Source: Chara braunii (Eukaryota > Plantae > Charophyceae). Taken from it: a stretch of 63,564 nucleotides of DNA. Where the stretch lies: NCBI GenBank assembly GCA_003427395.1, contig BFEA01000043.1:4610749-4674312 (forward strand). The letters run 5' to 3'. Positions 36,501 through 39,500 of the stretch are shown here, in pieces (within the stretch, counting starts at the first letter, position 1; the number at the start of each line of letters is the position of its first letter). The position numbers and the translations under genes are program-made. Under the pieces are notes generated by a model. It did not search any database and was not told where the DNA came from. It saw nothing but the letters and a program-made list of their open reading frames with translations.

Positions 36501-39500
36501 GAGCTGGGATTAAAAATCATTAAATTAATGCTGCGGGCAGCGGTGGCTTAGGTGCACATCTTTCAGGGGAAAGTATCAGAAAAATTGAAAACGGAATTCG
36601 GAATGGCAGAAACAGCTCCCAACATCCGTTAAAATTGGAACGATAGAGAGAAGATTCGAAATCGGGTCTGTATTTTAATGATTCAGGGCCGTCTAGGCTA
36701 GTTGGTAAAAACACAAAAAATTAGCATGGCCCCTGAGCAAGGATGACACGCAGAAATCGAGAAATGCCCCTTTCCCAAAAAAAAAAAAAAAAAAAAAAAA
36801 ACGCTCCCGGCGCGAAAAATATGGATATTTCTGCCCCCTCTTGTGACCCCCGGTAGGCCCAAAGTTCTGAGGCGGGCTGCTTCAGGGCTGAGAAAACAGA
36901 GCTGCCTCTGTTTGACAAGGGTTATCCAGGAAGATTGTCATGCCCGGCCGGGCACCCTTGTCAAACAGAGCTGCCTACGGTAAACCGTAGGCAGAGAGGG
37001 AGGGAGAAGAGGACAACAAACGAGAGGCTGTGACAAACTGTTTCGTCGGAGTGATATATATATATACGATATATATATATATATGGTCACAGCCCCTCGT
37101 TTGTTGTCCTCTTCTCTCTCTCTGCCTACGGTTTACCGGGCAGTTCTGTTTGTTCGGCCTCCTGATGAGTCGGTGAAACTCCGACGAAACAGTTTGTCAC
37201 AGCCCCTCGTTTGTTGTCCTCTTCTCCCTCTCTGCCTACGGTTTACCGGGCAGTTCTATTTGACGATATATAGGTGAGTGATAGTCTACTTTGATTTTGG
37301 TTAAGGTAGATTATCATTTACAGTGTAATCAGTGAGGGGATTCTGCAGACTGTTGAGGTTCAGCCTCCTGATGAGTTGGTGAAACTCCGACGAAACAGTT
37401 TGTCACAGCCCCTCGTTTGTTGTCCTCTTCTCTCTCTCTGCCTACGGTTTTACCGGGCAGTTCTGTTTGTGACGATATATATATCGGTTTCTGCGCTCTC
37501 CCAGAGGATCCAAAATCCGGGCTCTTTTTGTTTTTTGGGGGTTGGCTGTCAAGGTGGGGGAAGGGGGGGGTATAAATTGGTTTTAAAAGGGCTAAAGGGA
37601 TTTAATGTTTTCAACTTCAAACGTGGAAGGGGGTTGCCTTCTGTTATTTCTTTCTTATTCTCGATTCTGTGAGGAATTCTGATGCGACCCTCAGCCAGAA
37701 GTTGCTTGTATTGCAGTTCTGCAGAACAATTTTTTTTTTCCGGCATTTCTTCTTCTTCTTCTTATTTTTTTTTTCCGGCATTTCTTCTTCTTCTTCTTAT
37801 TTTTTTTTTGCGCTGGGCCTGCCCGGAACCTGGCCCGGGGGTTATGCCCGGCCGGGCACCCGGGTGTGTATCCGGGCACAAGTGGGGTGCCTGGGCCCCT
37901 GGGAAAACAGCACAGGCTGTTGTGATGTTAAGAAATAACTTTCAAGACTGGTGTGGCTGAAATCCCGATTGCCTTCATATCAGAAAGCCATGTGGCCATG
38001 GGCACGGTTTTGCCATAAGGCTAGCCAAGTAAGGTAATTGCAAATTGCGGAATTCCACCTGAGCCCCTTGTAACTGTGGTTTTGCGTTTAAGCGCGTTAG
38101 GGTAGTAGTGCTATGATGTCCGTGTATCACATATTGAGTGGCAGGCAGTGTGATTTGCGAAGTTACACCTGAGCCCCTCTTCTATGTGCAGGTTGCGCCC
38201 TCATATCCTGTAAAGATACAGGAAAAGTGGAGAAGAGGAGAGCACGGAAGGACTGGGAAGAGGAGAACGTGTTAGAAACGAGGAATGAAATGACCTGAAG
38301 ACGTAGTGGCTGGGTGCGGTTGCAAGTATGATTCAAAATGCTGGATCAATCTGAAATTCTGAATGTATCTGGGTGTGAGATACATGTAGAATGCTTGCTG
38401 GTGCAGCAAGACTCAAATGGTTGGTCGAAGTCAGTCGTGGATCAATAAAGTTGAATAAACATTCAAAATGTTGGATAGTTGAATGTAGGGAAACCTACCG
38501 TCTTGACCCGAATAGAACGCCTGGTCATTATTGCCGCACCTGGACTTAAAAGTGCCCCAAATACAGCTATAATGACAGGGCATTAAATTCGGGTGAAGAC
38601 GGTAGGGGGCAGTCATGGTTTTCAGTTTTAATTTTTAAATGCGTTTCAGTCCCGATTTTGCGAATTTTGCTCCAAAGCGAGGAAAATAGTGAATGTATCC
38701 AACCCAGCTCTAGGGTTGGGTTGGGATGTGTTGTATTCGAGGGATGCCTGAAGTGGATTTAGAAGTGAAAACGTCACTGTGCTGTCGTTACCCCTTGAAT
38801 GTAAAACATGTAGAATCCACTTGTCCTGGTGCAGACTGTAGTCCACATACATGTAGAATCTGGTGCAGACTGTAGTCCACATACGTGTAGAATGCTTAGC
38901 GGTGGAGCAAGGCCCAAACGGTTGGTCGAAGTCAGTCGTGGACCAATAAATTTGTCCCTTGGAGGTATTTCTTAAATGTTGGATCAGTCTCTGAATGTTT
39001 CTGGTGCAGACTGTTGTCCACATACATGTAGAATCTGGTGCAGATTGTAGTCCACATACGTGTAAAATGCTTAGTGGTGGAGCGAGGCCCAAAAGTTTGG
39101 TTGAAGTCAGTCGTGGACCAATGAACTTGTCCTTTTGGAGGTATTCTGATCACGCTCTCGAACTGTGGGCTCTACTCCTGATTCAATTAACATGTTTTTC
39201 CCATACTTGCGGTGCATCCGGTAAGCGGGGTCGCGGCACATGCGGCGCAGAGCGCACGCGCACGTGATGCGGCGCATCCCCGAAATGGGGGTCAGTGAAG
39301 GGCAGGGTGTGATGACCAAACACGCCCCCCTCCCTTCTAAAAATTTGAGTGCAAATGGGAAAAAATTGAGGCCACGTTAAACCACCAGTACTTGGCGCAG
39401 CTATCGATGCCGAGCCTGGAATGCCCCTGCGCGCCAAGTTTTGCTGAAGCGTCGGGGTACCGTTGTGAAAAAATTTTGGCTGGCGCTTCCAGCCATTGTG

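Follow-up and report, generated by a model that had tools for sequence, protein, structure and literature searches.

A dispersed hammerhead repeat in Chara braunii

The window analysed here is a stretch of 63.5 kb of DNA from the streptophyte alga Chara braunii, and every family statistic given below was derived from it. The window is repeat-rich and largely non-coding, and it contains dispersed copies of one short repeat, two of which carry a complete predicted type III hammerhead ribozyme. Local blastn of 37140-37482 against the window, together with alignments, recovered this family at 12 of 12 listed places (5187, 19439, 20584, 20722, 21106, 32216, 32460-32600, 32602, 36960, 37086, 37152 and 37358). 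This agrees with an earlier annotation made from the DNA alone (hereafter the original prediction), which had counted about a dozen copies or fragments. Pairwise identity among the copies is 88-100%, typically 93-97%. The 29-nt core with its helix II motif occurs seven times at three mismatches or fewer, compared with 0.00 expected in 100 shuffles, and when the window was scanned by regular expression for CUGANGA...GAAA cores of any kind closed by a helix II, this hammerhead family alone was returned.

The alignment further revealed two subfamilies, separated by a 2-nt indel in a small hairpin of the element body and by linked neighbouring changes, and distant copies were found to be up to 99-100% identical. 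Both features imply that amplification proceeded from several source copies. Segmental duplication of the clusters at 32 kb and 37 kb was considered and rejected, because the flanks 32084-32215 and 36775-36960 are unrelated when U6-like stretches are masked.

No long terminal repeats (LTRs) were found, the repeats around the hammerheads being truncated copies of one 120-nt unit. A tRNA-Met primer-binding site (PBS) was likewise not detected near any copy, the only one-mismatch matches in the window lying at 7939 and 48665; the original prediction of an element without LTR or PBS hallmarks is thus supported. The elements contain no Rfam match to tRNA, 7SL or 5S RNA, and no poly(A) was seen at the copies. 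A protein search with the frame traversing the element returned no relatives, and the 49-aa frame 32352-32498 of a longer copy gave no match at E <=0.001 among 1.84 billion representative proteins. An initial reading of 32373-32510 as a GIY-YIG remnant was therefore dropped, as this 49-aa frame lacks a protein relative and the stretch is an insert at the apex of an RNA hairpin. The family is a genuine non-LTR retroposon that lacks coding capacity and has been amplified recently.

A near-canonical type III hammerhead

The motif at 37346-37402 (+) is a predicted type III hammerhead with an open helix III of 8 bp, in which 37346-37353 pairs with 37395-37402. The cleavage triplet is GUU 37352-37354, with the predicted cut after U37354. 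Helix I spans 37355-37367 (4 bp and a 5-nt loop) and helix II spans 37375-37391 (5 bp, one of them G.U, and a 7-nt loop), and the catalytic core is intact (CUGAUGA 37368-37374 and GAAA 37392-37395), with the A15.1-U16.1 pair and a triplet of the NUH type. The Rfam model RF00008 (Hammerhead_3) matches 37347-37401 with 44.6 bits (E = 1.6e-8 for 621 nt searched). The minimum free energy (MFE) and centroid structures of 37346-37402 both give the three-way junction, which is also seen in the Rfam alignment, with an MFE of -17.9 kcal/mol (z -2.4). These results bear out the hammerhead and the cleavage site that had been predicted here. A second complete type III motif is located at 32512-32567 (RF00008 39.6 bits, E 3.8e-7 for the stretch searched), with an intact catalytic core, the A15.1-U16.1 pair, an NUH triplet and a predicted cut after U32519; its helix I has only 3 bp and is weakened by a C.C at the first pair.

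These two copies are the only ones with a complete hammerhead, and all others contain neither the cleavage site nor the 5' strand of helix III. For example, 37143-37195 reaches 26.2 bits with RF00008 and is without helix I and a proper 5' strand. Among the changes in the helices, we observed one both-sided G-C to A-U replacement in helix II (in the arm ending at 20709, where A-U replaces G10.1-C11.1 in the minus-strand copy 20672-20699), one G.U wobble, and two that are disrupting. The CAGTCTG of the copy near 19441, which had been taken to turn the G-U of stem III into G-C, is indeed compatible with pairing; however, the change is one-sided and occurs in a copy without the 5' strand. Overall, the motif is a near-canonical type III hammerhead that is predicted to be self-cleaving, and its presence in a short, non-coding, dispersed element is supported as originally proposed.

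When metagenome contigs were scanned for exact matches to the 29-nt core, no further copies of the family were found, and only two phage-like contigs were returned, Ga0114903_1000585 (L002 3440-3494, +) and Ga0114902_1000484 (L001 8195-8223, -). The type III hammerhead found there scores 53.6 bits, above threshold, and sits in an intergenic spacer between open reading frames (ORFs). It is identical to the Chara motif in the 29-nt core, helix II and loop 2, and unrelated to it in helices I and III; the common helix II and loop 2 match the Rfam consensus. From its sequence context, this hammerhead looks like a phage or bacterial one.

Insertion anatomy of the copies

The 3' end of the element is constant. 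In the alignment of all copies it reads ...CTGTTTG(TG)ACGATATATA, followed by (TA)n or an AT-rich flank, and the ten truncated copies have one tail in common. The 5' flanks are mostly GATATATA(TA)n too (at 5187, at 32216 and in the spacers of both inverted pairs), and (TA)n is present at both junctions in most copies; the copy at 19439 instead adjoins (CA)n from 19481 upward. The 5' ends, in contrast to the 3' end, vary. With +1 as the nucleotide that follows the predicted cut, their approximate positions are +2 (20720), +3 (32601), +5 (20709, -), +5 (37153), +12 (19480, -), +20 (21109, at helix II), +28 (32216, in loop 2), +30 (37052, -), +48 (37086) and +78 (5187). Variable 5' truncation combined with constant 3' tails argues, at the level of sequence, for target-primed reverse transcription.

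Four of the ten truncated copies thus start at +2 to +5 of a segment of ~128 nt. By a hand binomial calculation the probability of this clustering in +1 to +5 is ~4e-4, or ~4e-3 when the two arms of the 20570-20866 pair are counted as one event. We read this clustering as a possible record of RNA that was cut by the hammerhead before it was reverse-transcribed. In addition, starts at the cut end abut the interrupted body or the tail of another copy at 32600|32601 and at 37152|37153, and these junctions are exactly what run-off of a reverse transcriptase (RT) at a cut end, followed by a template switch, would leave.

The cluster at 37 kb begins with an inverted 5'-truncated copy (36960-37052, -), which lies head-to-head with another 5'-truncated copy (37086-37152, +) around a (TA)n spacer at 37053-37085; both were delimited by blastn and alignment, and the pair was also seen as a long hairpin in matches to Rfam miRNA models. 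The 3' end of 37086-37152 halts at CTGTTTG, and the next copy, 37153-37272 (+), is attached there; this copy starts just after the cut, has the incomplete hammerhead mentioned above and ends in the tail GACGATATATA. Directly after this tail follows the full unit, composed of a 5' region with a 22-bp hairpin at 37274-37321 (37273-37345, +; alignment and fold), the complete hammerhead, and the body with a CT-rich stretch, the small hairpin CTGCC...GGCAG and the 3' tail ...CTGTTTGTGACGATATATATAT (37403-37484, +; alignment).

The cluster at 32 kb has a comparable arrangement. According to the alignment, a 5'-truncated copy with the tail GACGATATGTA (32216-32327, +) lies directly upstream of a long unit, whose 5' region (32328-32510, +; alignment and fold) contains the counterpart of the 37274-37321 hairpin with a 93-nt insert (~32366-32458) at its apex. 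The second complete hammerhead follows at 32511-32567 (+). The body behind it is interrupted and joined to a copy at 32601-32705 (+), which starts at the cut end and has an internal deletion before its tail, as indicated by alignments and a 79-nt register repeat.

Sequence upstream of the cleavage site is continued in two copies only, 37273-37484 and 32328-32600. In both, at independent loci, the upstream region begins at the same boundary GGTGAGTG... right behind the tail of the preceding copy (in the 32328 case with 18 extra nt). This common boundary implies that a defined short unit of ~210 nt exists, from which the long form of ~300 nt differs by the 93-nt insert. The full length of the family is ~210-330 nt, most copies being shorter, and the ribozyme-to-ribozyme spacings of 206 nt (37162 to 37368) and 332 nt given in the original prediction are correct. 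Partial tandems are present at 32216-32705 and 37086-37484.

The second head-to-head pair consists of a left arm at 20570-20709 (-; motif scan and alignments), which carries the A10.1-U11.1 replacement, and a right arm at 20720-20866 (+; alignments), separated by the spacer 20710-20719, which is AATATATATT. Compared with the pair 36960-37052 and 37086-37152, the inner breakpoints and the (TA)n spacers differ, and the 3' tail is kept in both arms of each pair. The differing breakpoints and spacers indicate two independent events rather than copies of one foldback transposon.

Three further copies lie outside these arrangements: a solitary 5'-truncated copy at 21109-21219 (+; blastn and identity), 99% identical to 37153-37272; a hammerhead fragment at 19439-19480 (-; motif scan), which abuts a (CA)n/(CT)n microsatellite and diverges after CACAG into an assembly gap; and a 3'-terminal fragment of body end and tail at 5187-5236 (+; blastn), with GATATATA(TA)n on each side.

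At 36895-36960 and 5245-5262 we also noticed a tiny inverted stub of the element tail (AAACAGAGCTGCC / TCTGTTTGAC) adjoining the palindromic motif GCCCGGCCGGGC. This palindrome, which is also found 3' of the 5187 fragment and has further occurrences in the window (near 55340 and 4870, among others), probably represents a separate dispersed repeat that accompanies the hammerhead element.

Predicted fold of the unit

We folded the unit from cut to cut (37153-37354, 202 nt) as a linear molecule, as were all RNAs considered here. Its predicted free energy of -72.3 kcal/mol compares with -51.9 +/- 4.2 kcal/mol for shuffled sequences (z = -4.9), and none of 200 shuffles was as good. Helix III closes the predicted structure by joining both ends of the molecule, the body CCCCUCG is paired with the upstream UGAGGGG, and the 22-bp hairpin is formed. 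An intron reading of the 5' region (GGTGAGT...TTTACAG) is less favoured, as this segment forms the predicted hairpin. The long form, 32216-32520 (305 nt), retains the architecture (z = -2.7); its additional 93 nt sit at the apex of the hairpin, in whose stem the two copies differ at two positions that still pair through G.U. By itself, the short 3' product, 37355-37473, shows no exceptional stability (z = 0.1).

A compact fold whose ends are joined by helix III of a type III hammerhead is what the monomers of retrozymes and viroids look like, and the resemblance here is a prediction from two copies. Among our results, this modelled fold would be the best support for the circular RNA suggested in the original prediction. 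The unit is predicted to fold like a retrozyme monomer, but only two complete ribozymes are present. Consecutive intact hammerheads delimiting a monomer were not found in the window. Each cluster has one complete hammerhead, its neighbours being truncated, so that excision of monomers by two flanking ribozymes, as originally proposed, is not possible at the 32-kb and 37-kb loci and is not to be expected from them.

A probable Penelope-dependent retroposon and its alternatives

The motif, the copy anatomy and the predicted fold are established by the sequence, and transcription, cleavage and the identity of the enzyme are inferred. We consider it fairly probable that the family is a non-autonomous, non-LTR, type III hammerhead retroposon mobilised by the RT and GIY-YIG endonuclease of a Penelope-like element (PLE) of the Chlamys type, through hammerhead cleavage followed by PLE-type target-primed reverse transcription at (TA)n. 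The element itself is probably a terminal or deletion derivative of a PLE. Three Chlamys PLE types have been described in C. braunii by Craig, Yushenova, Rodriguez and Arkhipova (2021; PMC8557442), two of them, Chlamys-2_cBra and a third type lacking the endonuclease (EN), with canonical 3' hammerheads. The same study lists as hallmarks of PLEs frequent 5' truncation, partial tandems that form pseudo-LTRs (pLTRs), adjacent inverted 5'-truncated copies and microsatellite targets. All of these insertion hallmarks are present in the window.

In this scheme, a source copy would be transcribed and the hammerhead would cut the transcript after GUU. Reverse transcription of the 3' product of ~120-130 nt, from the cut to ...UUUGACGAUAUAUA, would then be primed by the target at nicked (TA)n microsatellites, which would account for the many copies starting 2-5 nt past the cut. 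Uncut, multimeric or re-ligated templates, together with template switching at the cut end, could account for copies spanning the site and for partial tandems, and priming on both target strands could account for the head-to-head pairs.

Several observations weigh against this PLE-dependent scheme. Both complete hammerheads score below the curated Rfam gathering threshold for RF00008 (44.6 and 39.6 versus 48.5 bits), so a whole-window scan at gathering thresholds listed only U6-like matches and neither hammerhead; their E-values, on the other hand, are far from chance. Both have GUU rather than the usual GUC, and a helix I of merely 3-4 bp. Stem covariation, proposed as a check in the original prediction, was not significant: across the window copies, few of which are complete, 69% of the cells are paired compared with 67% in shuffles, and the single both-sided change in helix II stands against the two disrupting ones. 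No RT, endonuclease or transposable-element domain was detected by Pfam in the 30 longest ORFs of the window; as the window thus holds no PLE ORF, the link to PLEs rests on the insertion anatomy and on the published description of C. braunii PLEs. The 5'-end clustering comprises only three or four events and could also be explained by a short master copy. Finally, the targets are mostly (TA)n, whereas Craig et al. give (CA)n and (C)n as the usual targets of Chlamys elements and (TA)n as those of Naiads.

The alternative closest to the PLE-dependent retroposon is a true retrozyme, in which two hammerheads would excise a monomer of 206-332 nt that a host RNA ligase circularises, the circle then serving as the template for rolling-circle reverse transcription. 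Such a retrozyme may still use a PLE enzyme, and it differs in the template and not in the kind of element. The stable fold of 37153-37354, with helix III joining the ends and the 22-bp hairpin, and the same architecture in the 305-nt long form are as this model would have them; plant retrozymes and viroids use the type III topology (PMC7761336), and partial tandems exceeding one unit are to be expected from a circular template. However, the window has no unit with a complete hammerhead on either side, the upstream partner being in both cases a truncated copy (37143-37195 and 32216), and the copies that end at the cut point to linear cut RNA as the template, at least often. We regard a circular template as a tentative possibility and somewhat doubtful. 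The proposal that the copies are not a separate family, but the 5'-truncated 3' ends and pseudo-LTR pieces of an already described autonomous hammerhead PLE (Chlamys-2_cBra or the EN-less PLE-X type), would fit the frequent 5' truncation of PLEs and their hammerhead near the 3' end (PMC8557442), as well as the fact that most window copies hold only the last 50-130 nt. We nevertheless consider it unlikely. A tail abuts the same GGTGAGTG boundary, only 80-185 nt upstream of the hammerhead, at two independent loci, which points to a defined short unit; the 49-aa frame of the long form has no protein relative, and no PLE ORF adjoins any copy.

Mobilisation by other machinery appears less compatible with the anatomy than the PLE-dependent scheme. 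A SINE-like retroposon (short interspersed nuclear element) that depends on a long interspersed nuclear element (LINE) and carries a hammerhead incidentally, with 5' ends set by cleavage or by the transcription start, would share the 5' truncation and the simple-repeat 3' end of LINE/SINE pairs, and LINE activity is evident nearby from U6-like retrocopies with poly(A) tails. Twin priming by LINEs, though, inverts an upstream segment of the same element, unlike the head-to-head pairs here, which keep the 3' tail in both arms, and neither poly(A) nor a tRNA, 7SL or 5S head is present; a LINE-dependent origin is accordingly quite improbable in our judgement. It is very improbable that the copies derive from a DNA transposon, either a foldback miniature inverted-repeat transposable element (MITE) with a TA target or a Helitron-like element, in which a decayed hammerhead-like motif would be present by descent or chance. 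The ~270-bp palindromic pairs in TA-rich flanks and the hairpin ~20 nt before the 3' end do recall such elements, but the palindromes differ in inner breakpoints and spacers and hence do not represent a single MITE, the point of 5' truncation varies among solitary copies, TC...CTRR ends are absent, and seven core matches where none is expected exclude chance. We thus favour the PLE-dependent "retrozyme-like" retroposon, a cousin of retrozymes rather than a wholly new system.

Other features of the window

Five U6 small nuclear RNA (snRNA)-like sequences, scoring 48.6-78.8 bits, were found at 21642-21750 (+), 31988-32083 (+), 36606-36774 (+), 42128-42238 (-) and 62406-62512 (-). Their 5' stem is mostly degraded, one has a 64-nt insertion, and two directly precede poly(A) or A-rich runs (from 32084 and from 36775 onward). 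Judged by these sequence features, they look like retrocopies or a U6-derived SINE. Three of them lie less than 500 nt from hammerhead-element clusters, and the intervening flanks are unrelated.

Between the hammerhead clusters are two tandem repeats, at 35037-35362 (~174 nt, 96% identical) and at 33557-33861 (~105 nt, 65-83%). The former creates an apparent 340-aa ORF at 34747-35766 (-), which has an internal peptide repeat and no Pfam match. Downstream of the clusters, a stop-free frame at 44494-45162 (+) gave weak matches to WD-repeat beta-propellers (E ~0.002), the only Pfam match among the 30 longest ORFs; it is possibly an exon of a host gene.

Comparison with known systems

The hammerhead-bearing Chlamys-type PLEs of C. 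braunii occur in the same genome as the window family and share with it the hammerhead near the 3' end, the genome-wide dispersal and the mode of insertion: microsatellites are the targets, and copies are frequently 5'-truncated, partially tandem or adjacent to inverted truncated ones. They are, however, 3.3-8.2 kb long and encode an RT, with or without a GIY-YIG domain and a gag-like ORF, whereas the window units have 210-330 nt and no ORF. The preferred targets also differ, being (CA)n/(C)n in the former and mostly (TA)n in the latter, and the likeness is judged by the published description rather than by sequence. Craig et al. described no non-autonomous hammerhead elements and do not state the hammerhead type in the text (PMC8557442). 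In the literature searched, we found nothing beyond that study on retrozymes or hammerheads in Chara or streptophyte algae.

The metazoan non-LTR retrozymes (Cervera and de la Pena 2020, PMC7229834; Li, Clavereau and Pollet 2026, preprint 10.64898/2026.07.22.740005) resemble the window family in their size of 170-400 nt, in being non-coding and free of LTRs and a PBS, and in units delimited by hammerheads, whose RNAs are predicted to be highly self-paired. For both, an origin as non-autonomous derivatives of PLE pseudo-LTRs is suspected. In contrast to the type III hammerhead with an 8-bp helix III found here, metazoan retrozymes have type I hammerheads, often with a weak helix III and acting as a dimer. 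They reside in animals, form long tandem arrays and have been shown to give abundant circular RNA, whereas the window family belongs to a streptophyte alga and forms only partial tandems.

The plant LTR retrozymes (Cervera, Urbina and de la Pena 2016, PMC4918200) have in common with the window family the type III hammerhead, a host in the green lineage, the lack of autonomy and a helix III that joins the RNA ends. Unlike it, they are 1-1.5 kb long and possess two direct LTRs of ~350 bp, each bearing a hammerhead, a tRNA-Met PBS, a polypurine tract (PPT) and short target duplications. Their central region of 600-1000 nt also makes the window units of 206 and 332 nt far smaller. They are mobilised by Ty3/Gypsy elements, and complete elements are known only in dicots (PMC4918200).

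These comparisons bear on the proposal of a candidate new retrozyme family. The unit is small, non-LTR and of type III, but the insertion signatures are Penelope-like, and the value of the finding is tempered by the hammerhead-bearing PLEs already published for this genome (PMC8557442). Where the type III retrozymes of plants and the hammerheads of viroids come from has yet to be settled (PMC7761336). It is conceivable, although we would put the chances rather low, that C. braunii possesses a viroid-sized RNA (~200-330 nt) with a type III hammerhead, which undergoes excision and circularisation and which a Penelope-like RT copies into (TA)n sites of the genome. If so, the green lineage would harbour a non-LTR, PLE-dependent retrozyme, and the hammerheads of type III known from viroids and plant retrozymes would be connected with the ancient association of PLEs with hammerheads, so far documented with type I motifs in animals. 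On our reading, the pile-up of 5' ends at the predicted cut may be a genomic record of ribozyme activity in vivo. The family would also offer a concrete system in which to ask whether the partnership of hammerheads and PLEs predates land plants. Two forms of retrozyme are known, the angiosperm form with LTRs, type III hammerheads and mobilisation by Gypsy elements, and the animal form, which is small, non-LTR, of type I and linked to PLEs (PMC7761336; 10.64898/2026.07.22.740005). Features of both come together in the window family, a type III element of a streptophyte alga that is small and non-LTR and bears insertion scars of the PLE type.

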